This document shows, piece after piece, positions 6,072 through 64,000 of a DNA stretch of 64,000 nt. A program made the position numbers and the translations under genes. The stretch is from positions 14,600,330 to 14,664,329 of the forward strand of contig OZ316898.1 of NCBI GenBank assembly GCA_973895155.1, read 5' to 3'. The DNA comes from Marsupella aquatica. Lineage: Eukaryota > Plantae > Marchantiophyta. A model generated the notes under the pieces. That model was not told where the DNA came from, made no database searches, and saw nothing but the letters and a program-made list of their open reading frames with translations. Every line of letters begins with the position of its first letter. Positions within the stretch are counted from its first letter, which is position 1.

Positions 6072-7097
6072 GTGATGTGCACTTCGTCAAAATAATGAAG
6101 ATAAGGAGCAATTATGAAAGGTATCCTAGCTAGGGACATAGTTGCTATCTATTATAACTCGCTTATCAAGGAGTAAATTAGTGGGCCGGACGGCAGGAAA
6201 CTGAAGCATCAATATCTACATGCATAAAACCTGATGAGTAATAGAAGGATTGTTTCACCACTTTGAGCAAATGGGGTTTTACCAGCAAATTTAGACTGTC
6301 AATGTCTCCCTTGACACCCAATGGAATTGGCTGGTATTGGGCTTTTCAACGAGTATACTGCTAGTTTTCATGAGGAATTAAGAGAGCTATAAATTTCTAA
6401 TTAGTTCTCAATCTCTCACTCTCTCATTGCCCATACTCCTACTTCCAAAATTTTACAGGAGATACCTTTGACATTTACTTCCAAAAGTTTACAGGAGATA
6501 ACTTGGACATTTAATATCCCCATTGATATCCGACCAAATTGGCTGTTCTGGGGCCTGTTAGGAGTGATCTTGGAAAGACCTTACCAGCAAGCCTAATTTT
6601 GTCAAAATTTCATTGAGAAGTGAGAGACCTACAAATTAAGATGAGCATCTCGTTTCCTTGTTACACTTCACTCATCTGTCTACTATCTACGATATGAGCT
6701 CAAAAGAGGGGCTCAATGTAGTCCACCCAACAATCTTCTATGTAGGAGCATTTTGGCAAACATGCAGGTTTATCCAGCCAGGCTTCAATTTCCCTCTCAA
6801 TTTTGCTTTCCATCTTTTAAAAATAAGAAATTGAACTCAATAAGACCACCTTCCAATTGTAAGAGCCACCAACCCATACTGGCCTTTGGAAATAATTGTA
6901 TCAGATACAGTGACCCATGCTTATCAGTGCTCCATAGTGGGCATATAGTGCTCTATGGTGGGTGTATAGCAGATCTCACTGACACACCCACCATGGAAAC
7001 ACCATGTCCACCCAGTGATTCTCTCCTTCGCCACAGTTACTGTGCAGTGCTTCTGCAAGAGTAGATGCGTCACCAATATCTGGCAACAGGTTGTTGC

Positions 7098-7225
7098 TAA
7101 ATAAACAATTCTGGATGAGCATTCCGGAAACTCATTTGTTGTTGCCCATTGGGTCCCGCATGCAATAAACAATTCTGGATGAGCATTCCGGGAAAACTCA
7201 TTTGTTGTTGCACATTGGGTCCCGC
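7098..7225. repeat. ~65-bp tandem duplication
   Basis: aataaacaattctggatgagcattccgg..aaactcatttgttgttgc.cattgggtcccgc occurs twice back to back. Confidence 0.85.
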
Positions 7226-10200
7226 CTTCCATGCTGCCATGGGACTTGCGAACAGAAATTGAAACCATAAAACTTGCAAAACAGAAATTAGTCTCCGTCA
7301 TGAATTGGAACCCAAAATAGGATTAGTAAGAGAACCCACCAGACATATTGCGCATTTCTATCATGAGCAAGTTCTCAAGCAACAGAGAACACCAGCAAAG
7401 ATCGTGATTGCACAAGAATGGGAGTACTTCAGAAATGGAAATTATTCTCGTTCATGGAACTGGAACCCAAAATAGAGTTCAGGCCCCACTCTCAAATTAG
7501 TGTTGCACAAGTTAATTGGGGACAAACTCTAATTGAGAGATAAATCCAATTAATGTGAACAGTATACATGGAAACGGGAGGCTAGTAGCATCTAACAGTG
7601 GGACCAACGGGAAACGGGAGGCTAGCATCAAAGACTAGTGGGACCCAAGGGGTTCTAATAAATAATTTTTGGGAAGCTCGTCCACCTGCTAATCCCCTGG
7701 TGCAATCATGACTGCAATTCCAGAAACAAAGAATGATGTCTGCCCTCGTGAGGAATGTACCATGACTGGCAATGGAGAGAAAGATTCTTTAGAAAACACA
7801 ACATGATTGTCTAGGTGTCAGACTGGGAGTAGACTTGGGAGCTCAAGAATTGAATGATTACAACCTCACCAGTAATTCTTTTGACTGAAACGAGATTCAG
7901 TTCCGATAGTACCGATTGATACGATGGATCACGAAGCTCATTCTCTGAGTCCAGACACAGTCTCTTAGAATATTCAATTGACATGTTAATAAGAGATTTG
8001 GCTCCGTACGATTTCAGTAACCCAAATCGCTTGTAACTAGATTTCGTAGAGTACGAGTCTCGATGTGCTCAGGTGCCCTGGTCCAGAAGCTAGAAATTAA
8101 GACTCAGGTTGATTGGTAGTCAAAATAATTCTGATTCAAGAGTTGGTTTCTTAAGATTCCCGACATTCATCTAAAATTGGGTGACGAAGACGTGAACTTC
8201 ATATCATAGGCCCGGAGACAAGTTGCTCCTGTGTCTATCATGGGAATGTTTCGAGAATCGAAGGTGATGTCAGCTCGAGGTAATCACTGGTTATGAACTA
8301 TAAATGATTTGTGTCAGGCGATAAGTTTCGGCATATTCATCTTCAACTGCAATTGTCAGCAGAAGTCATTCGTGAATGGAATTCGTAAGTATCATTTGTC
8401 CATAAATGCACCAAATTTAGCCCTACATGGTTTACTGAAGCCGTCCTAGGCAGAGAATTTTCGACCCAGCTGCAAGCCGAAATCCATTAGCCAAGAGACT
8501 CCTTACTTAAACGCTGTCATGATACAGGATGATCTGTGGGCCAAGGACGTGATCTTGTAGCTAGAATATCGAAGCCACTAGTATCAATTCTAGTGCCGCA
8601 ACTAATCTCGAAATACGGCCCCAGACATCCGTGAGTCATCGATCCTATTGAGAATTTTGAAGCATGGATTACTGTGGAAAGAAGGACTCCAGGCGCATTA
8701 CGTTCCCTCCCTCCAACTCATCTAGATCATCAGCGATTACGCCGGCCTGTCGGCAAACGCTCAGAGGAATCATCAGTAGTGCTAGCTCAGGCTGTGCGTG
8801 TCTGAAAGCCGTGCCCGCCAAACTCCAGATGAGTACAATGGTAACAACCGCCCAACGTGTCGAAGACCATTCGCTAGCATTTCATCAAGGATGGGACGCG
8901 AAATGTAATTTGGCCCCGTACATTACGCTGGTGTATGGCCAGGCGATGCCAGCACAAGTTGGCGTTATGGAGATGAGACTTTGCAAGCGATTTGGGTTAC
9001 AAGATTTGATGGGGCTCGGATGTCCCGGTGTGACGAAAGTTGATCAACTGGAAGTAGGCTATGTTGAGTTGATACTGTCGCAAACCGTAACTGAAATCCA
9101 AGGCCCGGAACAGCAAAAAACAACGCTATGATTTCAAATCTCGAGAGATTCCCGATGAAAATAATAATGTATAATATTCGTATAATATTCGTGTACTGAA
9201 TATTACCCATACCTTCCTCCTTTCTCCGCCAGGTGTCTTGATGTAATTGACCAAAGCTGGCCTGAATGAACTTCAAGCCAGTCCTTCAATGGTAATTGCA
9301 ATTACTGTACTCTCGTGTGCACGATAGCAAACTACAAGGCTTCCTAGCCTTTGAGTAATTCGAGGAGTGGTGTACTGGGCTCATTTGATAGCCGAATGAA
9401 AGTAACTTCCAAGCGGGCTTCCAAGATGTTCGCATCAGTTCAGCTGGTCAACCTGGAGAGACCTAGGTCGTGTCGTTCAAACACTTCTCTCCCACATTCA
9501 CACGCATACGTCCCCGGGACTACTTTCTTGGCTAGAATTTTGTGTCATTCTGCCCAAATTAAAGTGACCTACAACTCAATTTGTGTGAACTCATTACACT
9601 TTCACTTGTGGCCGATACTACTCGACATCCCACGCTGATCGAGTTGATTCATCCGGGTTGACAATCAGGAAGTTGATAGATTGCATTTCAAACGAACGTG
9701 GAAGTTCACGTTGTTTAGGCTACGTAGCCTCTCCTGTTCTTGTTGCACCCCTGTCGCATGCATCTTGACAGTCTGGTAGACTTCTTTGTAGACACTGTCG
9801 GAATCCATGGATTTAATCGAGGTGGGATTACGAGCCGCCGAGCAGAGAGACAGTCATGACCGTAAGCTACTGTAATCGTCAGTTGTAGAACAATTCACAG
9901 GACCTCAGCGGAACCCTCCTTACATAATTAAAAAATTGCTCAACAATTTTGAGTGAAATAGTATATAAGGACTCTATATTTAAGCAGGAGCTCACTGATA
10001 TATAGAGACCACCCACGTGGGTCCAGCATAATTATGGGGACCTTTTCCAGCTATTCCGTCCTTCACTTTTGAAAGGAAGGCAGCTCGAAATAATTGTGAT
10101 ACGTCTACTTGAAAGCTAACTCAACAATGACCAAGGAAGACTGAAACGATTCCAATCCCAACAAACCGTTTGTTTAGAAATACTCGAGCGGCAAAAGCTG

Positions 10201-19639: not shown

Positions 19640-20029
19640 TCGTTAGATTATAACGTATTTTATTTCCATAGCACTAGTTAGGCTTTAGCAGACTAGGTAG
19701 CACTCAACTCATTTGAGTTCCAGGTTCCCATAGATCATGGGATGGGGTATACCCAAGGGGTACCCAATGTGTGCTCACATTGGAGAGTTCGATCTTCTTT
19801 GTGTGTGCAGAGGCTGTAGAGGGTGAGAGAGATCAGCTCATAGTGGAGCTTGTGGAGCTTGGCTAAGTATGGCAGATATATGTGCTTGTTACATTTATAT
19901 TGATTCTTCTCTCACGGCCATGGACTTAGCTCAAATCGGGCGAACCAAAATACTCACTTTGTCAGTGCTGATTAATGGTGTATGCTGGTTCCTTTGCTGT
20001 CATGCTGTCCGATTAGATCCCCAATAACA
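19640..20029 (+). mobile_element. Possible degenerate solo LTR (copia-type)
   Basis: Contains catggacttagctcaaatcgggcgaacca, resembling the cgtggacgtagccaaccttgaggcgaacca motif of the copia LTR at 29 kb, and ends in ..ccaataaca. The left boundary and TSD are not resolved. Confidence 0.35.
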
Positions 20030-22999
20030 ATGAAGTGGACAGAGACATGCTATGCCTTTGCAAGTCAATCTTCTTGGTCAAAGTCAGATAGCAAACAATG
20101 CATGTTTTAATAACCTTACATCTAACTATCTATTTGCAATCAAAAGCTAATTGTCCGGGTAGGCAGTCTAGAGTGAAGCCTCTAGACCATGACTCGGGTG
20201 CATAGAAGTTAGGAGTGGGAGTGGAAAACAGATAGTGAGGGTGAGAGTGAGTCTCCTAAAATGGTTATGTACTCACCTCTATTTATGTTCAATCACCTCT
20301 ATGTATGTTGAAACTCTGGGTACTCAAGCTAGTATCATTTAAATAAGGCCAACATAGTGGCCAGCATATTGATGGGGCCATATACTCAACCCTCCAGGCA
20401 TTCTCTAAAGTCGCATTGTACCCTTATCATTACACGAACTATTTGGCAAGTGTTATAGAATCTCATCACCATGTTACATGCACTCTTTTCCACTTCTGTC
20501 CAAGACCAGTCCCTTATTTCAGCTCCTTGTCTGGATGTCCTTAGCCTTTACAAAGAATGTGCAGATGGACATTAGTACTTTTCCCAGACCAAAGTGAGTG
20601 GACCATTTTCAATCTGAAATTTAGTTCCAGGCCTATGATCAAAACAGGGGCCTGTATGGGGAATGCAAACAATGCATTCCAAGAGAGTGTACGGACTTTG
20701 GCCACAAAATGTCACCCTTCAACCTTTACAAATCAGGACCCACCTGCCATGTAGGCTCGGGCAAACCAGTCTAAAATGGCAGCCAGAAGTCTGCTACAAT
20801 CAAGCACAGCCAGCCACCTTAAGTAGGCTGGAATTGCATCTTGGTCTACAATTTAAGTCATCCATCGGCTCATTCTTGTAAAGCCCCCTTAGTTGCCTAC
20901 TCACCCTCAATCAGTGTCTAACCCCATTTTGCTATGTTAGGGACAGCTCTAATAGGGAGTCCCAAACAAGATCATTCCCTAAATGTTATGGGCGGGGTGA
21001 CTGACCCAAAAATTTGTGGTCCCCACAAAACGTGACCATCAACAACTTGGTGGGTCCGCACCAAAAATCACTCAGCGCAGTATGCATCAATGCCCTTCAA
21101 GAATTGTCTGTGCAAATCCATAAATCCCCAATGCCCAGCTGATCATGGGATCCTGTAAAATACATCACAATGGGAAACCATTTGGATTAAGTTTTTCCAG
21201 AAGTTGGGTTGTGGTGAAAATTCTTGGAGTGGCTAACTGAAAAAATAAAATGGAAACAGCAGCAATTGTGACATGGTGTGATACCTACTAGTGAATTAAA
21301 TCAAAACCCATATAACGTAGGGTGGGACTCGAGAGCCTTAACTCCTGAAGATGAGGGACCAAGTGTGTCAATGTCAGATCAAGCATACAAATCATAGTTG
21401 ATAGTTCTGCTTTTCCTGGGAGTGGAACATGGACAGTGTAATCGGTCGCTGCAGATGCTGCCGATGGACTAATTGTGGTGGAATCATTTATGTCTTGCGG
21501 CTGCAGACCGCAGCTTTGCCGTCCTCGAAGGGGAATTATGCACTATCCGAATTGATGAACTGAGCTATTTCCGACAATCCGACGGTTCAAGCCGTGAAAT
21601 CCAATCCTCTCTTGTCGGTTTTCCTCTGAAGAAATCAGACGTTAGCAATGCATCCAATTTCCGCTCAGCAAGGCCAATGAGTGTCTTTACTTCGCCGAGA
21701 TTGGCTCGTATGTCATCTTGTGAGCTCCAAACATTTGCTGGTTTTTCTTTTTGCCACCGCCTCAGTGAGGTCATTGCGATTGCGGAGCGAGAGAACTACA
21801 GTAATGTAGTGTACTACTGTAGGAAGCTAGGATAGAGTCAACCCCTCCTCCTCTCATTCAATCCGAACAAGATTTTTCCAACACCACACGCACACGCCAC
21901 TGGACTCTACAGTGCTCCCCATGCTCTCGACCAGAATGATGCTTTCAGGGGCCCAAACCGCACCCACAGAGAATTACGGTACCAGCTTTGTGACCACTCG
22001 ATAACCAAGAGAGAATCTGTTAACAATTGAACTGATTCTATTTGTCTGCCCATAACAGGAGATCTGGAACAGTTTTTTGTTATACCCTATTGTCATCCCG
22101 ATTTGTAATTAATAATCAAAATTTTGTGTCTGGACAAAAATTTTAAACTGTTTATGATTCTCAAGAATATTGTAACGTAAACTTCAGAAACAGTCTAAGG
22201 AAAGTGAAGCCCGGATGGCCACCATGTTGGACACAATGCTCGGGTGGACCACACTTTGGTGGTCCATGGGAGAACTTGATGAACTGTGAGTTTTTAAAAT
22301 TAGTTTTAGTTTTTCAATTGCAAGGAACTAGAGAAGGATGAGACATCAAAAAACGCTAGCCCTAAATGTTGCATATTAACACAATGAAAATTAATTTAAT
22401 AGAATTTATCACTCCACAATTCATGATGAATAACTCAAACAAAATGGCCAAAAGAATCATTGTCACTTTGGTGGTAGTGTAACTTATCTACTCCTAGAGC
22501 ACATCCTCAAAACTAAAAAATAATTGAATTTATGCTCTTCAAGTTATTACAACTAAACTAAAATTTGGGGAATTAAATGTGGTCCATGAGGATTTCAAAC
22601 TGCCATTGGTCCATGGAAGCATCATTTTCACAGTCTAAGTATTCTCAATTAAAATTTTCTTTAATTGAAAAATACAATGAGAAAAAATTGAAGAAATAAG
22701 TATTAATTAGCTCTGGTCCTGTGCAAGTGGGGTTACTGACATGTCGAGGGTAAATTACATGCCAGCACCCTCAAGAAAGGATGAGTAGAGTTGCGACCTT
22801 GATCTGCACTAGTAACAAAGATGTAAATGAGAGAATCCTCAGGCCAGGCTGGCAAGTGGGTTATGACCAATCTTGAAGGAGAGTATATAGAAAGAAGGAA
22901 GTCAGTATTATAGTTATGTGTCACCTTGCCAGCTGCTCTTGTAGAGAATCTGACAACATCACACAGGAGAAACTAGCAAGCTTGCACACATACACGAGA

Positions 23000-35074: not shown

Positions 35075-37151
35075 CTTACAAGTTGTGGTTTGGACTTGCC
35101 AAATCTTATGATACATATCTTAAACTTGTCACCACCTGGTCCTTATGGACTGATCCAACTGCTCGCCATAAACATACCTTGGGTGGGTGAGAGATCGCCA
35201 CCCCTCTTGAGACATGGAACCATTGGTCACATCATTGCCACCTCTTCTTAGGCAAGCCAATGGGCAGTTGCCACAATGGCTGCTTCCCGTTGACCTTAAA
35301 AAAAATCCTGTTGCTTGGTGCAAAAAATAAATGGGGACTTGAGGGAGACAGGTGAGTTTGGGTAGACAGTGTCATCTCTGGAGTTGTGATTCCTTAGTAT
35401 CTGGCCCCAACAAGTTTGTACTTCCCTACGCCTGTTTCTAGAACTTGTTGTCCGGGCCATTGGGTGGTTCCCTACATCCATTGCAGCCCAATCTCGAGCC
35501 CGGTCACTCAAGAGTTGCCCCTTTATATTCTTAATTGGCCTTTGGCACATAGTTTTGTGTAATTGGATTTTTCCGGAATGGAGAGCGTGAAACTCAGAGG
35601 CATGAGGTGAGTTCAGCCCACTCATAAATGAGTAATTAACGACAAAAGTACTGAGTGTTGTTAACTCATCAAAACTTAGTTTGAGTTACCAAGGGAAAAT
35701 ATCAATCTGAAATCTCCCGATTCACTCCTGATTTTTATGGAAATAAGTTGATTCACTCAAGGCATCATGTCTTGAATAACGACATGCCTTGAGTGTTGCA
35801 AACTAGGCTTCAATGTGATTTATCTATCTGAAGGCGCACAATTAATGCTGAAAATACTCTGTCATGACGTGTTTTGCATCATAAATATTTATGTGTTCTT
35901 GTCCCAGGCTAATTAGCCACTCTCACCAATCTGAAGCACAGTTCATGATAGCAGAACTGGGTCTTTCGACAGGGCAGTCAAAAGTCGGTCTGCTGAAATA
36001 CTAGCTATCATGATTTGGTCTTCAAATCGTCAAAGTTCCACCATACAAGCAATGACGTGACAGCATAATAGACAGTTCGAGAATGCCTCTGGGATTACAG
36101 TCCCTACCTTCATCCTATCGAAACAGCATGATGGGGGACATCCCCAACCGCCCTGGGGACCGGCGTGGCAGGATATCAAGCTGATATATTATTGTACCTG
36201 GATGACAAGGCTCTACAGTAGTGATCTACCGCACCTACTTGATGATGGTAGTGATATGGTGTAGCTGAAACATATGTCAAAATACAGAAAATCACTTTAT
36301 TCTTCCACTCATATCTTGGGAAGTTGTGACTGCATAATTATACATATTCTGGCTAATCTGCTGAGCCGCGCTCAGTCGAAATCTTGGTAGATTCTTGATT
36401 ATTTGCACACACCTTTCGTTCAAAGAGACAGGTTCTTAGTCACAGGTTCATTGACTGCCTCATACTGCTGGCATCTATTTACGCCGGATCTGATGGCTCG
36501 CTTTTGTATCGTGCACCCTGTTTCAGCAACGATTGGCTACTCGTTTTTGCTAGCAGAGCTTCTCGAGTGACCCGATTCACTGATCCAGGATTGAGCACTA
36601 GTATCATCGTCTGAGCTCTTATTATTATAATACATAGAACTTTGGAGTCTACAGTACAACCAAGTTTACCGTGTGATCTGAATGGAAATCCCTCGGTGAG
36701 TGTCGTTTTGATGTACTGGAGACAAAATAAATTTGTTGTGAGTGTTTGGCCTCATTGGGAGATGGGAGGAGATCGTTAGGACGATGACTTTATACTACCG
36801 GTAGCTCAAGGGGAACACCCTCTACAATGTGGGCCTGTGGAGAAGAACTTCGTCAAGGTTCTCATGCTGGCTTTACAAGACCTCGGGGGTCATCATGTTT
36901 CTTGTTATTCCCTTTGACATTAAATCTGGACCATATATAAGTGTGGAAGCGATTGCAATTGGCTTGCTTTACCGGAGGTGTGGGGCCATTGAGGTATGGT
37001 ATTTACTGATCCTGGCAAAGAGTGGGCCCAACTAAATGCTGATGGGAGTGCTGATGTTCTCTAGAAGTTTAGACCACATTTTCCAAACTTCACTCAAAAG
37101 AACTGAACTTTATTTCAACAGATTTTTGGTTTGGAGTTTATCTTTACAACA

Positions 37152-37644
37152 AGTGACAATAAATAACAATACTGGGCATTTACAAGTCTGGTAATTGAAA
37201 TGAGTACAATCTATATCCCTTAAAGAGTATCAATTAGAGGGCAAGTCTGGTGCCAGCAGCTGTGGTAAGTCCGGCTCCAATAGCATATATTTAAGTTGGT
37301 CTAGTTAAAAAGCTCATAGTTGGATCTTGGGATGGGCCGAGTGGTCCGCCTCTTTTGGTGTGCACTGGTCTCTCCATCCTTTCAGTCAGAGACGCACTCC
37401 TGGCCTTAACTGGCTGCGATGCGGAGTCGACTATGTTACTCTGAAAAAATTTAAGCGCTCAAAGCAAGCCTATGCTCTGAAGACATTAGCATGGAATAAC
37501 TTGATAGGACTCTGACTGGTCCTATTTTGTTGGTCTTTGGGATCGGAGTAGATTACTAGGGACAGTTGGGGGCATTTGTATTTCATTGCCAGAGCTGAAA
37601 TTCTTGGATTTATGAAAGACAAACTTCTGCAAAAGCATTTGCCA
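37152..37644 (+). pseudogene. Degenerate 18S rRNA gene fragment (~490 bp, V3-V4 region)
   Basis: gtgacaataaataacaatac..gagggcaagtctggtgccagcagc(t)g(t)ggtaa..agttaaaaagctc(a)tagttgga..caaagcaagcc..ttagcatggaataac..gaaattcttggatttatgaaagac..aaagcatttgcca. It is colinear with plant 18S but has many substitutions and no flanking rDNA. Confidence 0.9.
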
Positions 37645-38489
37645 TGGCAAAAGAAGATCCTGCCAAAAGTTGCATGGAAGTTGAAGAATAATGTCAAAAC
37701 CTCAATGGGGCATTACTAGGTAAAAATTTGACGGTTTGGGTCGCAATTTGTATCGATCTTCATCGAATCGCCAAGAGCTTTCCAGTGCCGTCAAGAAATC
37801 CAGAATCCAATTGGGATTAACAAGTTACAACCCAAAATGACTGCCAAACTCAACAAATGGATGGAAATTTGTGTGTCCCAAAGGCTCTGAGTCTTAACCC
37901 TAAACCCTAACTTCATTACCTTGAAATGGTGGACTGGGGTCTAGAGAGCAAATCCAGCTCCATGCCCGTTTGGAGGCTTTGAAAGAGGGAGGGGCACAGC
38001 TAACACCCCGGGTCCTCACTTTTTTTCTTCCAACCACCACACTTGAATAAATTTAGGGTTTTTTCATTGGGTTTAGTGAAAGACTTTTTTTTTTTTTTTA
38101 AGAACGTTAGGGGTTGTTTTGATCTAATTTTGAGAATTATAAGAATCATAGGGTTTTTTGAAATCAAATTTGAAAATATTCAAAAAACTTTATTGACTTA
38201 AGTTTTAGGGTGTTTATTCCCTCAAAACTTTGCGCGTGATATGGGACACCCCTTGGATTGAGGCCCCTAAGAGCTAACAGGGTCAGGAGGGGGCTGGGAA
38301 TGTTATTGTGCGTGTTGGCGATGTTGGCACCAGTCCCGCCCACACTGATGAGGGAGGGAGATGTCAACCCAACCACTGTCAGGGCAAGTGTGCAGGGGGT
38401 GCTCATCCTGGGAGGGAGAAGAAAAAGACTGGACAGGAGGTGGGGGTGGAACAAACGTGTACAACATAATACACTGCACAAATTTCATT

Positions 38490-54026: not shown

Positions 54027-54138
54027 TGTTGAAAGCCTCCGTCCTAGCGCAGGACTCCACTTCTCCCGGTTTGACCTTGCCCGTCAAATTGGGCGTTTGA
54101 GAGCGGCAAATTGACAACCCGGCACCCGGGTTCGGAAG

Positions 54139-54590
54139 CAGTCCGGGAAAGGAAACGTCCGGTTCGGGGTTCGGGTTCGGGAGGAGGTTCGGGAGGAGGT
54201 TCGGGTGGGGGTCCGGGTGACTAATCGGGTCCGGGTCCGGGGCGGAGGCGCTCGGTGGGGGCTCGGGGTGGGGTTCGGGTCCGCTCGGTGGGGGTTCGGG
54301 GTGGGGTCCGGGTGCGGCTCGGGTCCGGGAGGAGGAGGTGCGGGGGGTTCGGGTGGGGGTCCGGGTGGAGTTCGGGTCCGGGTCCGAGGGGTTCGGGTTC
54401 GGGAGGTACGGGGGGTTCGGGTGGGGTCCGGGCCCGGGGCGGAGGCACTCGGTGGGGGTTCGGGGTGGGGTCCGGGTGGGGTTCGGGTCCGGGAGGCCGG
54501 GGTGGCTCCGGGTGGGGTTCGGGGTTCGGGGTCCGGTTCGGGGTTCGGGGTCCGGTTCGGGGTTTGGAAGTTCGGGGTTCGGGATTGAGG
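54139..54590. repeat. G-rich subterminal repeat array (GGGTTCGG / GGGTCCGG)
   Basis: Dozens of degenerate gggt(t/c)cgg units, likely transposase-binding sites. Confidence 0.85.
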
Positions 54591-54710
54591 CTCGGAGAAT
54601 TAGGGTTTCTTACGGTTGGAGGATGGGGCCGGCCGGGAAAGGGTCGGGGGCTCGGGAGAGGATAAAAGGAGGAGATCCCTCCTCCCCCTCCTCATTTTCG
54701 GTTTTGCAGA

Positions 54711-54824
54711 AAGGAGGAGGAGGAGGAGAGGAGGAGAGGAGGAGGAGAAGGAGGAGGAGGAGGAGAGGAGGAGGAGGAGGAGAGGAGGAGGAGGAGGAGG
54801 AGAGTAGGAGAAGAGGAGGAGGAG
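54711..54824 (+). repeat. (GGA)n purine microsatellite
   Basis: Read directly; it ends at a consensus donor GAG|GTAAGT (54825). Confidence 0.9.
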
Positions 54825-54942
54825 GTAAGTGTTTGGTTTTGGTTTTTATTTTTGATTTTTGGTTTATTTTTGTTTGTTTGTGTTTTGTTTTGTGATTTTT
54901 TAAGTTTTCTTTGTGTTTTAAACCCTAACCTTAGAGCCAAAT

Positions 54943-55329
54943 GGAGGGATATAAAGAAACACTTGTACGCGCACGCTTTGAGCCTCGGTTCGGTTTGCGA
55001 TACTCCGTACAAGAATTTCTTAATATCACCTTAACAATTTAGTCTCCTTTGTTCATTAAGTAAAACATTTGCGGAGATAGAGGAATCCATGTACGCATGC
55101 TTAGAGTTTCGGCTCGGTCTGCGATACTTTGCATGGATACCACGATTCGCCGAGAATGTTTTTACTTGAATTACAAATGAGTGTTAAGTTATAGACACCA
55201 AATCACATATGTCGAAGCAGGAATATAACAACTTTGAAAGAAAAGAACACTTTTGTGCGCATGCTTTGAGCGTCCGCTCGGTCTGCGATATTTCACAACT
55301 GTTGTCTTTCTATTTTATTGTTGTTATAT
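54943..55329 (+). ncRNA. Cluster of three miRNA-like hairpins with a shared ~36-40 nt loop and unique stems
   Basis: Arms gatataaagaaacacttgtacg / cgtacaagaatttcttaatatc (54948-55027); aagtaaaacatttgcggagatagaggaatccatg / catggataccacgattcgccgagaatgtttttactt (55058-55167); atataacaac..gaaaagaaca..ttgtg / cacaa.tgttgtctttc..gttgttatat (55223-55329). Each encloses cgca(c/t)gctt(t/a)gag....g(g/c)tcggt(t/c)tgcgata. Expression is unknown. Confidence 0.55.
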
Positions 55330-55517
55330 AGAAAGGTAATTAAAATCATGTGTGCAATAAAAATACATAATGCATGGGAGAAACAAACCGGGAAAAGATA
55401 ATAACAATACGACTTGTAATTTTCAGGTTGGTCGTTGAATCCTTATTGGAAGGATTTTATTTAAATCCCGGTAAGATCTTGTTCCTCCCTCACATATTCC
55501 TTTTGTGAAGGGAAAAC

Positions 55518-57119
55518 ATGGTCATCGAAAATTTTAGTTTAGAGTATAGGCAAGTGTTGGAGATGATCACAAAACATGTGAATGAGGGATATGAGCCGAA
55601 TCTTGTTGCTCTGGATGCATTGAAGAATGCTCGAAACACTCTCGAACATGCTAGGAATTCTAGCAAAGTGGCCGGGAAACAAAAACGGAAGGGGGCAAAC
55701 GAAGAGGCAAAACAGGTTCGACACAATGTGGTAGTGTCGATATGGAAAGAGATACTTTATCGCTACACTCAACCGAAACAGTATGGGGTGGACGGGTTCG
55801 AGAGGGAGTTCACAAGACACGGAGAGAAAGGATACAAGAACTTTCTTGGTGAGATAACCCATTGTATGCGGGAAAGTGTACAAAAGGAGGACAATTTCAC
55901 ACGAGAGCAAATGAAGTCATTTGAAGATGAAACTGAGAAATCGGGAGGATTTCTGGAAAATTTGGCACTCAACTTGGAGAAGCATGTTTGGGATAATTTG
56001 GCAGCCAAAGTGGAAGAGGGTGACACTACATTGCTTGGAAACCCCGGGATGTACACACACAAGAGAGAATTGCTAGTGAAGTGGAGTAAGGAGTTGACAA
56101 TGGCGAAATCTGATAGCAATGTCAAATATGCTAACGAGATTGTGCACTTTGGGGATGTCAGCATCAAAAGTGCTCGAAAAGGAACACGTCCATCGCGTGT
56201 AGTTCCAGAGGTTAGGAGTATCCATTTTCTTAAACCTGAGCAGGTGCACAACACACGTCGCATTGGGAAAGGAATCCAAGGAGAGGTATACACTTGTCGT
56301 ATATTACATTGTCCTCTCATTCCCGTCAACGTGACCTTAGTCGCAAAACGGTTCAAGGATGGAGACAAGCATAAGAGACGAACTGACGCATTACAAGAAG
56401 TGCTTATGGGAGGACTGAATCATAAGGGAATCGTTGGAGCTCTTGCGTTGACTATTGAGGATCCGCCAAAACTTATTTACGATCACTATAATGGAGGTGA
56501 CTTGGGTAGCTTTATTGATAAGTGCGGCATATCGTCAAAGAGCAAGGGGAAGGCACAGATCACGACGGACCTTGATTTCAAGTTCATTTCGGAGAAGAAA
56601 CTCTTGTTGGAGAACCGGTTGGGAATCGCCTTGGCTTTGCTGGAGACATTGCAATACTTGCATGAGCATGATCGATTTCATTGTGATCTTCACTTTGGAA
56701 ACATCCTTCTTCATTTCGATCACGAGCACGATGTGGCTATTAAGGTGTATGTTGGTTTATATGATTTTGGCTTGTCTAAGCATAAATCACAGTGCAAATT
56801 ACCAGCTAATCGGATGTGGCCCACAGCAACAGAAAAAGCAGCAGCATACCAAAAACAATTTCCACAGTTGGCTCCGGAGCTTGTTCAACCTACCCCTGTC
56901 GAGTTTAGTGAAAGTACCGATATATATGCTTTGGGGAATATTTTTGAGACATTATTGACAGAGAATTGGGATGGAATGTCTAAGGGTTCACGGTTTTTGG
57001 GGAGGGGTTGGAGTGCACAAGTGCATGGCCCCAAATTGGATGTCATAATCCGTGAAATGATGGCCACGGATGCCAAGAAAAGAATGGATTGTGCTTTTTG
57101 GAGTTTGAAGATAGTTTGA
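55518..57119 (+). CDS. Intronless protein kinase (TKL-like, non-RD) with an unknown ~240-aa N-terminal domain; transposon cargo
   Basis: 533-aa ORF with all core motifs: IGKGIQGEVY, VAKRF, alphaC Glu (LQEV), HKGIV, YNGGDL, YLHE..FHCDLHFGNILL, LYDFGLS, LAPEL, TDIYALG, and subdomain XI Arg (DAKKRM). Confidence 0.88.
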   Translation: MVIENFSLEYRQVLEMITKHVNEGYEPNLVALDALKNARNTLEHARNSSKVAGKQKRKGANEEAKQVRHNVVVSIWKEILYRYTQPKQYGVDGFEREFTRHGEKGYKNFLGEITHCMRESVQKEDNFTREQMKSFEDETEKSGGFLENLALNLEKHVWDNLAAKVEEGDTTLLGNPGMYTHKRELLVKWSKELTMAKSDSNVKYANEIVHFGDVSIKSARKGTRPSRVVPEVRSIHFLKPEQVHNTRRIGKGIQGEVYTCRILHCPLIPVNVTLVAKRFKDGDKHKRRTDALQEVLMGGLNHKGIVGALALTIEDPPKLIYDHYNGGDLGSFIDKCGISSKSKGKAQITTDLDFKFISEKKLLLENRLGIALALLETLQYLHEHDRFHCDLHFGNILLHFDHEHDVAIKVYVGLYDFGLSKHKSQCKLPANRMWPTATEKAAAYQKQFPQLAPELVQPTPVEFSESTDIYALGNIFETLLTENWDGMSKGSRFLGRGWSAQVHGPKLDVIIREMMATDAKKRMDCAFWSLKIV

Positions 57120-57472
57120 ACGTTTCCAGATTGCACATTGCATTTGCACAACAGTCCATATCTTAGAGATTAGAGATTAGGGTTTACACAATTTTGTAAA
57201 GGTCACCTTAACGATTATATGTTTATTCATTGTATGTCAATTACAATGTTCTGCATTTTGTTGATAATATTCTATCAAACTTTGTCGTGAATGCCCAAAA
57301 TTGTGCTAAATGTGTTTGTACATTGTCAAATATCGCAGACCTTTTGTACACATCGCAAACATGGGACGATGGGAATTGTCTTCTGATGATGAAGACAAAG
57401 AGTTCATGACACAACATCTTACCATGCAAGGGTCAAGGATCCTATTGTGACGATGAAGCTCTTCGTAATAAT

Positions 57473-59287
57473 GTGTTGGATAATCTTACAACCATTGGCA
57501 TTCACTATGAGGCTAAACCCAAGGTTGATGGAACACCGGCGCCAAACACAAGAAGATGGGAAGATGAGGGTATGAAGGATGAATGGAGTATATTAACGCC
57601 CAATGTAAATCCTCCCCATGACGAATGGGCCATGAATGCAAAGGAATTGGAGATGTTGATGCCAAAGAAAGACTTTTGGCCATTAGCACAACAAGTTTTT
57701 CACGATCCGGATCTTTGGGCAACAAGATCATGGGCGCAAGAAAAATTCACCATGTCCAAAGTAACACATGCAGGTGTTAAATCACATTGGCAGCAACAAT
57801 ATCGAGAGTTTGCTCCACACAAAGCCCAAACAAAAATGAGTTCCGTTTACCCTCCTTTTATCCGATGTCTGATTGTTGAATTCATTCTCAAGTGGAAGGT
57901 GGATTACCATTGGGAAAATAGTGCTGGCAAGCTGACTCATCAGGTGCATCCATCAGTGGTTGCGATTGCAACGAATAGGAATACAACTATTGCAAAGGAC
58001 CCTTCAATGGAGACTTCCAACAAGGGATCCAAAAGAAAGCTAGATGACACTGGGGAGGGATATGCGCATGAGAAGGGGAAAGCGGCTGTACTTCCTCGAG
58101 TCTCCATGCCTGACCGTGCAGCACCACCAACCAATGTGGAGTCAACGCACACCAAAAAACCAATCCTTGTAGGTGTTGGGAGTAGAACTCCACACGCAAA
58201 GAACAACAATGTTACTGATGCTAACAAGGATAAGTTCAACCTGCACAACATATGCAAGAGCTTGGGGGCAGATGTTGTAGAGGTGATTGAGACAAATCTC
58301 CGCACGAAGTATGTAGTGAAGCTATGTGAATGTGGCAGCATCAAAAAGTTCAAGTCACAATTGCAACAAGTTGATATAAAGATGAGATCACTTGAGAAGA
58401 AGCAGAACGAGCCGACGACCAATTCTGAAGTGATGTTGTACAAGTGTCAATTGTTTGACAAGATGGAAGAAATCAATAAGCTGACAAAACAACTTGTTGA
58501 AAAAGAACGTCAATGCAATGAATTGGCACGACTTGAGGAGAAGGACAAGATCATTAATGATCTTAAAAGTGAACTTGCAACGCAAGCAATCATCATATCA
58601 AATCTTCACGAAGAGGTGCAAGAATTTAACAATGGTGCTTTGGGGATGAGGTCAAACAAAGGGCAAGGTGAATTATCGTCGCCAAATTTTGTTAACATGC
58701 AAATCATAGATCCTACAGGGCACAACAACCTTTTTCTAGATGTGGAGGTTGACGCGGAAGGTATTGATAGGTTTTTTGATAAGTGGAAAAAGGATGAAAC
58801 TATGGCAGCATTTGTTCGTGAAAAGGACGACAAGTGTACTTGGTGTCTATATCCTTGGGGCCCTGAATCTGTTTCCATGTTGGGAACCTGCGGTCATATA
58901 TGGCATCATGCTTGCTTGTCTAAATGGTTGAAGAAAAGCCAAAAATGTTGGTGTCGCACACCATTTCATGAACGCAAGTATGAGCAACGAGGATTGTTGA
59001 AGCAAATGCCATCAATGGAGACTCAAAAAAACACTGAAGATATGACTGAAGATATGACTGAAGATACTATACCGGCGATGCAAATAGATGAAACTCCCAT
59101 TGAACATTTCACAATCAATGAATATAATTTGTCAGATGGGGAATTTGACAGGTTGTTATTCAGTGGTCGACTCGATGAGTGGAAACAATATGCGGCAGCC
59201 AACCAGCCATCAATAGATGAGCAAAATTTGCAACGATCCATTCGGCGTCATCGACGACGTCAACAACAGGCAGAGGTGAAAACATAA
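57473..59287 (+). CDS. Coiled-coil + C-terminal RING-H2-like protein (putative E3 ligase); transposon cargo
   Basis: 604-codon open frame (first in-frame ATG at 57572; likely original ATG at 57361 in another frame). Heptad-rich region KSQLQQVDIKMRSLEKK..EEINKLTKQLVEKERQCNEL..LHEEVQE. RING motif CTWC-x14-CGHIWHHAC-x10-CWC. Confidence 0.8.
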   Translation: MLDNLTTIGIHYEAKPKVDGTPAPNTRRWEDEGMKDEWSILTPNVNPPHDEWAMNAKELEMLMPKKDFWPLAQQVFHDPDLWATRSWAQEKFTMSKVTHAGVKSHWQQQYREFAPHKAQTKMSSVYPPFIRCLIVEFILKWKVDYHWENSAGKLTHQVHPSVVAIATNRNTTIAKDPSMETSNKGSKRKLDDTGEGYAHEKGKAAVLPRVSMPDRAAPPTNVESTHTKKPILVGVGSRTPHAKNNNVTDANKDKFNLHNICKSLGADVVEVIETNLRTKYVVKLCECGSIKKFKSQLQQVDIKMRSLEKKQNEPTTNSEVMLYKCQLFDKMEEINKLTKQLVEKERQCNELARLEEKDKIINDLKSELATQAIIISNLHEEVQEFNNGALGMRSNKGQGELSSPNFVNMQIIDPTGHNNLFLDVEVDAEGIDRFFDKWKKDETMAAFVREKDDKCTWCLYPWGPESVSMLGTCGHIWHHACLSKWLKKSQKCWCRTPFHERKYEQRGLLKQMPSMETQKNTEDMTEDMTEDTIPAMQIDETPIEHFTINEYNLSDGEFDRLLFSGRLDEWKQYAAANQPSIDEQNLQRSIRRHRRRQQQAEVKT

Positions 59288-59626: not shown

Positions 59627-61145
59627 GAGAGACGGTAGCACAGTGGACTCAGGTACTGATTCTCTGAAATCATTTCCAAAAGGAGATCGTGTAGCACAAT
59701 GAGTTCAACAAAGTCAACATCGCAATGGTTTTAGCCGCCCAAGTTGAGAATGATTTTGTAGAAGGATGTATACCTAAGTCCACTCACTTTTCCTGTCTTT
59801 CATAATTTTTTCCGCTATTGCTGCTACGGCCAATGACATTCATGCACATGCGAACCGAGGCCAACGCCTACTCCTTTGCCCACCGCAAAAATGGGCCCTC
59901 ATTACAACTTGAAGTTGAACGGAGTTTATTTGAGTACGAGAGAAGTTCTGAAAGCAAATGCACTCTCAGGTCAAATTTTCAGGTCCTTCGAGCAAAAAAT
60001 TACTGAGTATGTCATCGATCCGTTGGTTTCACAACTTCTCTCGTACTCAAATAAACTCTGTTCAACTTCAAGTAGCGTAGCTGCTACGGCCAATGACATT
60101 CATGTGCATGCAAACCGAGGCCAACGCCTCTACATTTGCCTACCCCAAAAATGGGCCTTGATTAGAACTTGAAGTTGAACAGAGTTTTTTTCATTATGAG
60201 AAGGTTTATTCAAGCAATGGCACTCTCAGGTCAAAATTTCAGGTCCTCCTGACTTTGTTATTATTGAATATGTCCGTGCTCCGTTGCTTGAATAAATCTT
60301 CTGATAATGAAATGAACTGACCAATTACTGGAGTACGGCTGCTACGGCCTATGACATTAATTCGCACAATTGCATGTTTATATCCTCTCCTTTCCGAATT
60401 CCAATTCGAGCTTGGACATCCTCTCGTCAGCTGATCTTCACCATTGCAGTTGCTCTTCACGCAAACCGAGATAGCAGTCTCTAGAATCCTCGAACCTATT
60501 TTATTTCAATGCATCATTCATAGTGTTTGAGGAATCCAAAGGTTCGCGTGAGGAGCAACTGAAAGGGTGGAGACCTGCTGACGAGAGGGTGTCCAAGCTC
60601 GAATTGGAATTCGGACAGGAGAGGATATAAACGGGTGAACTTTGACTTGAAATTGGTGACTGTATTTTGCGTCTGCATATCAATTCGGTGACCGATCTTG
60701 CGGAATCCCCGTGACCCTGTCTGATCATCATCATGACATTGCTCTCCTTGGCCACCAATGGGCCCTCATTACAACTTCAAGTTGAACGGGGTTTATATGA
60801 TTATGAGAAGGTTACTGATTATGTAGGCGATGTGATCATTTCACAACTTCTCTCATAGTCATATAAACTCTGCCCAACTTCAAGTAGTGCAGCTGCTACG
60901 GTCAACGACATTCACCCACCCCAAAAATGGGCCCTCGTTACAACTTCAAGTTCAACTAAGTTTATTTTATTACGAGAAGGTTTATTCAAGCAATGACATT
61001 CTCAGGTCCAATAATGAGGTCCTCTCGACCTCATTATTATTGAATATGACGGTGCTCTATTGCTGGACTAAATCTTCGCATAGTGAAATGAACTAACCAA
61101 TTCATGGAGGGGGCTGGTATGGACTACGGCTGCTATGGCCAACAA
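59627..61145 (+). ncRNA. Tandem array of fold-back hairpins (four ~260-bp-type units, one long 92-bp-stem hairpin, one upstream imperfect hairpin)
   Basis: Scaffold motifs gctgctacggccaatgacatt (59820, 60080, 60338, 60892, 61129) and aatgggccctcattacaacttgaagttgaac (59890, 60150, 60757, 60926). Inverted arms at 59907-59947/60033-60073, 60190-60220/60281-60311, 60376-60467/60541-60632, 60774-60813/60845-60885 and 60959-60994/61059-61094. Confidence 0.65.
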
Positions 61146-61381: not shown

Positions 61382-64000
61382 TCAAGGCTGTGAAGAGAAA
61401 TTTCGTGCATTGTTGTTACAATTTTTGCACAAAAGCGCATTCCACTCGTCTTGTTTATCGCCCCAACTAAGTGGATCACGATTGTGTGACTGAACATTGT
61501 GCGACGTTTCTTGAAATGATGATATTCCTCGAAACCCACCAAGGCCAATAGGCCTGTTCGACGTATATGGATTCATGACACTTGGCCCTGCATACGCATT
61601 CAAGGGTGGACCTGCATGGTGTTGCCAGTTTGCATGTGGGTCGTTTGAAGTTTGACCTTCATGATTGTTGTATCCATGAAAAAAGGTTGATGTCCTTCCA
61701 TCCGTCGGATGCCCTGCTGTGCCTGTGCGTTGCTCGTTGAAATATGGTCTGCTTGTGTCAACATCATTCGCAAAGTTTGACCAAGGTGACCTTGGTTGGG
61801 AAGGCATCACAAAGTTTGTGTCCAATGATGCATCTTCCTCGTCTTGGATTTGCGATTCATCAATTGTAGGATACATCTCCAAATCCATTTCATTCTCCCA
61901 TTCCTCTGCATCAGTGATGTCTGTATCTGGTGGAATACGAGTCAAGAACTCACTATCCTTATCCAGGGAAAATCCGTGTAGCAATTCATCAGCATCATCA
62001 ATTGTATCATAATCTTTGACATCTTCTTCACCAAGAGCCGCACGTGTTGCATCGTACTCTTCATTGCTGCACAACTCCATGGAGATAGGTCTAGGTCCAT
62101 CATTTGTTCTTCTTCTTTGGTCATAACGTTCATATATAAACGTATGCAGGTTTCGAACATTTGTGAGCCCTTTCTCTACCCTCATGTTTGTAAATACAAA
62201 CACCAAATCTTTTGCTCGATCATTTGTCAATCGATTGCGACTTTTGGAATGTATAAATCCATACGAACTCCAGTTTCGCTCGCAAGCTGATGCGCACACT
62301 TTTTGGTGTAAGATTCTTCGCGCCAGGATTCTCAAATGTTTATAATCTGCACCATACGCATGCCACCACTCTGCTGGACTGACATTACCTATACTTGATT
62401 GGGCGGCTCCCATCGCTATTGATGTGTTGGGATTTTTTTTTTTGGCGTCAATGGCTTGACTGTGGATGGCAGAAATAAGTTCTCTGACGTCGCGATCATG
62501 GTTGATCCCCTCCTTCACCTGTTGTTCTGAATATCTAGCAATGTATTCATTGAAACCCTTGTAGAGTTCTGGATCTCCAGCGACATCTATGTCCTCATCA
62601 AAAAACATTTGGGGATTGAGATATGCTGCCGCTAGCATGAAATCAGTGGTAAGAGATTTTTTTTGATCCAAATACACTTTTAGTATCTTTGGTTTCAATA
62701 CCTCTGTTACCAATGGACAATCCTCCATGCTTGCTTTCAAAACATCAATCCCTCTTTTCAAACTCCAATACAACCAACCTGATTGCGGAGAATCACCATC
62801 AAATTCTCGCAACATCTTGACCAACGGAGTAAAGAATTTAACTGTATCCTTCACTTCAACCCAAAATGTATCTTGCTGTATCCACATTTTAAGTTCGTCT
62901 GTCTTTCCCCTCGTCATGTATCCAACTGATTTTGGTCGCAATGGAAGTCTATCACGAGAAGACTGCCAATTATCATCAATGACCATCTGTTGTAAAGCTC
63001 CTCTTAGCTCCAACGCTCTTTGTGCCATTAGGAAATTGGTCGCAAATCTAGTTGCATTTGGATTCAACAGTTTTTTGTCAGGAGATTTTCTTGCAAATAT
63101 TGCAGAAAGCTTTTGCGATGATGAAACTACTTTTACTATCCACCTCAACCGTTTAAAAATCTTTTGGAATGGATTCTGTCCAGCATCATCTAGCACTACA
63201 CGCTTGTGACCACACATATCCTCTAGCAGCAAATTAAACACGTGGGCAACACACTAGCTCCAAGTGACATGAGGATACTTTTTCATGACTACCTCACAAC
63301 CTGCTACACGATTTGCGGGTGCTCCATCAGTTACGATTTGAATAATATGATCTGCACCAATATCCTCAATGTATTTCAACCACATGTCGCCAAGATATTT
63401 CCCATCTTTCTTGTCAGCTTGCGCAGCATTCCAACTATCCAAGAAGAAGTCACCTTTAGAAGTCAACAACATGACATTCATCAAAGGTTCTCTTCGGACA
63501 TTTTCCCATCCATCTGAAGAAAGAGAATACCCATAAGGTTTTGCCTCCTTTAAAGTTTGCGTCATGTCCTTTGTGAGATCCTCCTTACTGTCTTCCAATA
63601 ATTTCAATCGCAAACTTCGCATCGTAGGTAGAGAATAACCATTGACAATCCCTTTTGAAGTCTCTATGATTGCTTCTCGAAAAAAAGGATTATTTGAAAC
63701 ATTGAATGGAATACCACTGGTGTAGAAAGCTTTCGCCCAAAGCTTATCCAAATTTGTTCTATTTGGAATTTGATAGGCATCCATAATTGGGTTAGGAAGA
63801 TTTACTGGCCTATCTCCTTCCCTTACATGTGTATCATCCATGTCAACATAGTTTGACCCTCGTGTGGATGCTTGCGAATATGAACTTCCAACGCTTGGCC
63901 TACGACCTCTCACATCCCGCAAGATATGACTTCCATCCCGTCGTTTGTACTTTAAGGTCGGTGGAACCTTTATCACATTGTACATAATGTTGATGGCATC
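61382..64000 (-). pseudogene. hAT transposase (DUF659 + hAT dimerisation domain), one in-frame TAG at 63254-63256; N-terminus beyond the window
   Basis: AFYTSGIPFNV..FF, YSLSSDGWEN..PLMNVM, IIQIVTDGA, W(S*)CVAHVFNLLLEDM, ATRFATNF, LVKMLREFDGD, AAAYLNP, PAEWWHAYG..LA.RIL....SASACERNWSSY..IHSKSRNRL...AKDLVFV..N. Confidence 0.92.

Follow-up and report, generated by a model that had tools for sequence, protein, structure and literature searches.

A Conserved, Strand-Specific Hairpin Module in the Predicted Leader Introns of Both Genes of a Liverwort hAT Transposon Lineage

The three hairpins at 54943–55335 of the Marsupella aquatica DNA analysed here (a stretch of 64,000 nt, referred to as a whole as the window) belong to a hAT transposon. 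Sequence comparison with related loci indicates that together they make up one instance of a structured-RNA module of ~400 nt, conserved and strand-specific, that is composed of hp1, a linker, hp2 and hp3 and is typical of a liverwort hAT lineage. In this lineage the leaders of the kinase unit and of the transposase unit both retain an RNA structure that is supported by covariation, specific to one strand and conserved better than the adjoining promoter and first exon. Eukaryotic cut-and-paste transposons are thought to depend on terminal DNA signals and ordinary promoters. Literature searches on the motif sequence and on structured RNAs in hAT leaders found no relevant description, and no Rfam family corresponds to the module. 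It would belong with the cis-acting structured RNAs that mobile elements carry and is of a kind not described for cut-and-paste transposons, its host here. The covariance model R1 defines a new RNA family that can be searched for in bryophyte genomes and tested in Marchantia-type systems.

Architecture of the Host Element

The element runs inward from a probable left terminus through a promoter-like segment and a leader to a cargo kinase, with the transposase gene facing it. Related loci are given L numbers; L124 and L125 are complete elements from the leafy liverwort Calypogeia fissa. The features of the window are as follows.

54065–54140, + strand: probable left terminus; TIR beginning CCCGGTTTGAC, then short GTCAAA/GGCAAA/TTTGAC subterminal motifs
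54141–54600, + strand: G-rich low-complexity tract of GGGGTTCGGGG-like units between terminus and promoter, with a counterpart in L124, L125 and L128
54600–54669, + strand: promoter-like segment; telo-box TTAGGGTTT at 54600–54608 and TATA-like GATAAAAGG at 54661–54669
54700–54824, + strand: predicted non-coding exon 1, a GA-rich (GAGGAG)n leader; start uncertain
54825–55426, + strand: predicted 5′-UTR intron of 602 nt, GTAAGT ... TTTTCAG, holding the hairpin module
54943–55032, + strand: hp1; core motif 54971–55002; MFE −34.5 kcal/mol, z −5.87
55040–55185, + strand: hp2; core motif 55095–55126; MFE −48.7 kcal/mol, z −4.49
55215–55335, + strand: hp3; core 55259–55290, paired part 55223–55329; MFE −33.4 kcal/mol, z −3.19
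55427–55517, + strand: predicted exon 2 leader, 91 nt up to the ATG
55518–57119, + strand: cargo kinase ORF, 533 aa (Pkinase / PK_Tyr_Ser-Thr), downstream of the module
57473–59287, + strand: RING-finger ORF, downstream of the kinase ORF
61382–63985, − strand: hAT transposase gene (DUF659 and hAT dimerisation domain), convergent with the kinase

The left terminus, at ~54065, was placed by comparison of independent copies: the alignment of five element ends begins here, and the sequences in front of it are dissimilar. A script search for TSDs and inverted repeats did not recover TSDs and returned low-complexity matches only. A low-complexity GC-rich tract separates terminus and promoter at both element ends, as visible at 54141–54600 of the window and at 7040–7470 and 20975–21449 of L124. 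The two tracts of L124 are C-rich on the same absolute strand at either end and are thus unmirrored, unlike the hairpin arrays; a tract of this kind could possibly form G-quadruplexes or R-loops.

The telo-box and the TATA-like element occur as a pair, in the same order, in L001, L124 and L125, and a homologous GA-rich leader precedes the donor in L124 and L125; promoter activity of 54600–54669 is predicted from these features. The initial annotation had placed the hairpins in a 5′ intron of the kinase transcript, and the splice sites it had named are present: GAG/GTAAGT with the intron starting at 54825, and TTTTCAG/ ending at 55426, 91 nt before the ATG at 55518. A T-rich stretch lies between the donor and hp1. 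Splice-like donors and acceptors flank the arrays at the same positions in every readable element, the diverged relatives L001, L124, L125 and L128, which bears out the placement of the hairpins between such sites; transcription and splicing of the leader intron 54825–55426 are predicted from the sequence. The complete order of parts (terminus, tract, telo-box, TATA, GA leader, donor, hairpins, acceptor, ATG) is shared by L001, L128 and either end of both L124 and L125.

Two further signals were noted in this leader. A second telo-box, AAACCCTAA, lies at 54920–54928, in the predicted intron directly before hp1. In addition, all kinase-side leaders have a conserved G/GTAAG ~45 nt past the acceptor, ahead of the kinase ATG (window 55470–55476; L001 ~1330; L125 ~17140 on the − strand). 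It is possibly a second donor, for which a matching acceptor in the window would give an intron of only ~40 nt.

The 5′ part of the window's transposase gene and the hairpin array expected to belong to it fall past the end of the window. Within the window, the transposase ORFs 61382–63241 and 63254–63985 are in the same frame and are separated by one stop codon (63254–63256, − strand), so that this copy may either have decayed or contain a small unrecognised intron at the stop codon. An N-terminal BED finger is seen in L125, and its equivalent here would likewise fall beyond the window end.

The Three Hairpins and Their Shared Core

The 64-kb window contains exactly three copies of a motif of ~32 nt, GCAYGCTTWGAG..TCGGTYTGCGATA, at 54971–55002, 55095–55126 and 55259–55290, always on the + strand. 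These are the three copies that the initial annotation had pointed out, and no match was found in any of 100 dinucleotide shuffles of the window with three mismatches tolerated. Every copy tops a long imperfect hairpin (hp1, hp2 or hp3), and all three hairpins fold better on the + strand than their shuffled controls, with the z-scores listed above. The motif had been described as the loop of these hairpins; it does cap each of them, but it is a bulged apical stem rather than an open loop.

The motif pairs with itself to form an apical stem of 11 bp, followed on the 3′ side by a bulge of 6 nt. Reading upward, the stem consists of 4 bp (CGCR), a 1×1 mismatch (Y), 3 bp (GCU), a 2-nt 5′ bulge (UG or UW), 4 bp (GAGN) and a small loop of 4–5 nt, and UUCG-type loops are frequent among module copies. 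The 3′-side bulge has the sequence AUAYUY (AUAUUU-like) and lies ahead of the point at which the lower stem resumes. In hp2, the whole hairpin extends to ~50 bp with conserved internal loops in the middle of the stem.

The Module in Related Elements

Homologues of the kinase and the transposase were traced to their contigs, and the covariance model R1 was built from ten cores. An exact search for the window's own kinase found no recorded entry. Kinase homologues of 47–74% identity and transposase homologues of 59–69% identity carry the module; the nearest named relatives of the transposase, at 63–64% identity, are from C. fissa. Together, 38 covariance-model matches in the window and seven related loci and three further copies in L128 give 41 copies in 11 arrays, seven on the kinase side (window, L001, L002, L003, L120, L124 and L125) and four on the transposase side (L124, L125, L126 and L128). 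All 41 copies are in sense orientation to, and upstream of, a kinase or transposase gene. The link to the kinase transcript drawn in the initial annotation is therefore correct as to position but too narrow, as the same module precedes the transposase gene. In the complete elements L124 and L125, the arrays are mirrored at the two ends, those of L124 lying at 7751–8400 on the + strand and at 19715–20808 on the − strand.

The distant hAT element L127, with 30% transposase identity, is without such hairpins. A metagenome scan with the motif pattern, which is too degenerate for this use, returned 120 loci, nearly all of them chance matches in GC-rich bacterial contigs, and L120 was the only real one. 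Contig L129, which was checked for transcript evidence, extends just 19 nt upstream of the gene.

Within a leader the core is repeated three to seven times. When the core is removed, the flanks fall into four clusters, corresponding to three or four fixed stem types. Reading inward, hp1 is always followed by hp2 and then, after an additional type in L001 and L126, by hp3. The stem types are conserved across elements and at both element ends, and some arrays show tandem expansion; the kinase-side array of L124, for instance, has hp2 six times. The stems had been taken to be unrelated, and they do differ among hp1, hp2 and hp3 within one array; each type, however, is conserved in the matching hairpin of relatives. 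A search of the window and related loci with the covariance model locates matches in hairpin arrays, all of those in related loci falling within the arrays counted above, and the flanking stems prove to be of fixed types rather than free. The proposal of a constant loop with a variable duplex, in the manner of repeats and spacers, is thus not upheld, the stems being of fixed types in a fixed order.

The array of the window aligns collinearly with that of L001 at 65% over 489 nt and, as a kinase-side array, with the transposase end of L128 at 67% over 493 nt. No other part of the leader, promoter and exon 1 included, can be aligned across distant elements or from one end to the other. Conservation extends to unpaired sequence: the internal loops of hp2, the bulge of 6 nt and the CCTTAACAATTTAG-like linker that follows hp1.

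Covariation and Strand Specificity

In the alignment of 38 copies, 92.6% of the cells of the stems are paired, compared with 22–48% when the partners are slid; this alignment was fitted to the covariance model, which favours structure, and the slid controls and separate MAFFT-based folds agree with it in direction. Of its 19 pairs, 14 have changed on both sides, and none of 500 shuffles reaches the observed values, figures that overstate independence, as the set of 41 includes many tandem copies and recent relatives, which are not independent counts. The ten-copy seed alignment gives the same picture. Full-length consensus folds by type have 16 of 32 pairs compensated in hp1, 30 of 51 in hp2 and 22 of 39 in hp3.

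The deviations from Watson–Crick pairing are strongly asymmetric, with 100 G·U cells and 8 A·C cells in the stems. Palindromes in duplex DNA should show the two equally. Without reference to an alignment, the mean folding energy is −46.2 kcal/mol for the sense strand and −30.4 kcal/mol for the antisense strand, a difference of ~16 kcal/mol of which part is due to base composition, as judged by shuffle means; in 35 of 36 copies the more stable fold is that of the sense strand. The G·U excess together with this advantage points to RNA of the sense strand. The UUCG-type loops and asymmetric bulges, taken with the strand bias, likewise favour RNA over double-stranded DNA. Compensatory change and strand bias indicate that the hairpins are sense-strand structures under selection.

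Possible Functions of the Module

We give about even chances to the proposal that the module acts in cis as an RNA platform, probably one that binds protein, through which both transposon genes are co-regulated. The module sits in the predicted first (5′-UTR) intron of both inward-facing units, kinase and transposase, in sense orientation, and would fold in the nascent sense RNA. The invariant bulged apical stem with its 6-nt bulge would then serve as the recognition site for one protein, encoded by the host or by the element, and both transposon genes would come under a single post-transcriptional control, for instance of splicing, retention or processing of the leader. The conservation of unpaired bulges, internal loops and linker argues for sequence-specific recognition. 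The conserved hairpin top is a plausible protein-recognition site, as the initial annotation had considered; the binding of a protein and the regulatory outcome are our inference from this conservation.

Long stems of 35–50 bp in plant nuclear RNA are likely to be Dicer-like substrates, which is a counterpoint to the RNA platform. It is possible, though not probable, that the hairpins are intron-hosted small-RNA precursors that are cut by a Dicer-like enzyme, with the conserved top as a loop-to-base processing signal; in the same measure, the arms might give miRNA-like RNAs or hairpin-siRNAs with a regulatory effect on host genes or on the element. The hairpins have the shape for it, being long (90–150 nt), imperfect, tandem and located in a predicted intron, with significant z-scores and with stem sequences conserved by type. 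Their lower stems permit 20–22-nt duplexes with at most five unpaired and at most three asymmetric positions in 18, 34 and 11 windows of hp1, hp2 and hp3, respectively. Plant polycistronic or intronic pri-miRNAs, such as the loop-to-base precursors of MIR159 and MIR319, are similar in these 90–150-nt imperfect tandem intronic hairpins and in an upper stem that is conserved in structure and sequence. The best-conserved block of the module, however, is the bulged apex with the 6-nt asymmetric bulge and not a 21-nt duplex: the mid-stems vary with compensation, none of the permitted 21-nt duplex windows includes the conserved top, and hp2 retains its internal loops mid-stem. Plant Dicer-like processing is not known to require invariant bases inside stems, such as those of the module. 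The module also differs from pri-miRNAs in that it contains no conserved near-perfect 21-nt duplex and that a single module serves two different genes and both transposon ends, and it lacks a feature that defines such precursors. An Rfam search of the whole window at the gathering threshold and of 54600–55600 at E ≤ 10 gave no match on the hairpins (54900–55400); the matches within 54600–55600 are of low complexity only, at 54639–54765, and the hairpins agree with no MIR family up to E = 10. Target prediction for the arms, proposed earlier and performed within the window with the element's own genes included, yields no target above chance, complementarity being no higher than for shuffles. The best site (57320–57344, +), in the gap that separates the RING ORF from the kinase ORF, could pair with the 3′ half of the hp3 core (55277–55301) with 3 mismatches in 21 and is probably due to chance, as one of five shuffles equalled it. 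A precedent for small RNAs is provided by the hAT element Tam3, in which hairpin transcripts of the 5′ end are converted to 21–22-nt small RNAs that suppress transposition (bioRxiv 10.1101/2024.06.24.600476). The Tam3 Stabiliser loci of that study are comparable in that hairpin RNA from the 5′ end of a hAT element affects element activity, as would be the case in the liverwort; the Tam3 hairpin comes from two head-to-head copies at a host locus, whereas the liverwort hairpins are built into every element and are conserved by covariation.

The mirrored placement of the arrays at two ends, a further counterpoint to the RNA platform, is also expected of an element that acts in transposition at the DNA level. 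Tam3 end regions form hairpins, which lends this some support, and the subterminal repeats of Ac are AAACGG motifs. We consider it unlikely that the arrays are extended subterminal repeats, or strand-specific ssDNA hairpins, that are bound by the transposase at both ends. They do occur at both ends, on opposite strands, of the complete elements L124 and L125, and repeated subterminal sites are needed by hAT elements such as Hermes, where they are reported to be bound by BED domains (PMC10368747). The repeats of Ac and Hermes resemble the module in having units at both ends in inverted orientation but are motifs of 5–8 bp, of a class expected within a few hundred bp of the TIR, whereas the module consists of structured hairpins of 90–150 nt that lie past the promoter, at distances from the terminus of ~880 bp (window) and ~810 bp (L124), and show strand-specific G·U pairing; it lacks a feature that defines such repeats. 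The usual subterminal sites have a better counterpart in the short GTCAAA/GGCAAA motifs by the inverted repeat than in the hairpin arrays. A G·U to A·C ratio of 100:8 and a strand gap of 16 kcal/mol are unexpected for sites in duplex DNA, asymmetric bulges disfavour cruciforms, and the orientation of the arrays is explained equally by the convergent genes. Hairpin cores were also compared with the terminal 22 nt as possible terminal-repeat copies, and the similarity is at chance (p 0.2–1.0 against shuffles). That the hairpins have no function and are a palindromic repeat or a tandem duplication in decay, located in the leader by accident, is very improbable: a copy number of three to seven and recent tandem amplification in some arrays, as on the kinase side of L124, would suit it, but order and structure are kept across elements with kinases that are 47–55% identical and with promoter and exon 1 that cannot be aligned, and compensatory changes and the G·U bias are present. 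A small uORF or coding repeat is extremely improbable, even though hp1 opens with a conserved ATGGAGGG and its ATG is in good context in most copies, for the frame through the core differs between copies (e.g., window and L124), the loops contain one-base indels (L001 copies c and d) and substitutions follow the pattern of paired RNA; the coding reading was ruled out by the unconserved frame. K-turn, H/ACA and C/D snoRNA readings were rejected, by eye only, as the expected boxes and G·A pairs are absent.

In shape, then, the module resembles pri-miRNA clusters, in placement hAT subterminal repeats and in architecture viral protein-binding stem-loops. Like HIV TAR and RRE and lambda boxB, it has bulged stems with invariant bases around the bulge that are repeated or multimeric, are kept by covariation and lie in 5′ leader or intronic RNA, a likeness of architecture only. 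Unlike them, it is hosted by a cut-and-paste DNA transposon and has no known binding protein. A more specific form of the RNA platform, which we regard as quite unlikely, is a TAR/RRE-like device, in which a factor encoded by the element would bind the bulged stems of the nascent leaders at both ends and gate the kinase/RING and transposase units jointly. The RING protein (tail RSIR.HRRRQ) and the uncharacterised N-terminal domain of the cargo kinase are candidate factors. Such a device would constitute an RNA-based autoregulatory circuit, and we know of none in cut-and-paste transposons. Whether as a regulatory RNA platform or as a built-in source of small RNAs, the module would show a cargo-bearing transposon coordinating or restraining its own expression.

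Other Features of the Window

A second array of long hairpin-like repeats, unrelated to the module, is located at 59820–61145, in the interval that separates the RING gene from the transposase 3′ end. Two adjacent fragments on the + strand, 37108–37283 and 37312–37659, match 18S rRNA (Rfam RF01960) with 92 and 116 bits and cover model positions 31–984 only; they give the impression of an rDNA pseudogene or a partial rDNA fragment and lie well away from any complete rRNA unit of the window. The C terminus of the RING protein (59224–59284) has an arginine-rich tail, RSIRRHRRRQ, that is kept in the L002 homologue and may serve for nuclear localisation or, as an arginine-rich motif, for RNA binding.
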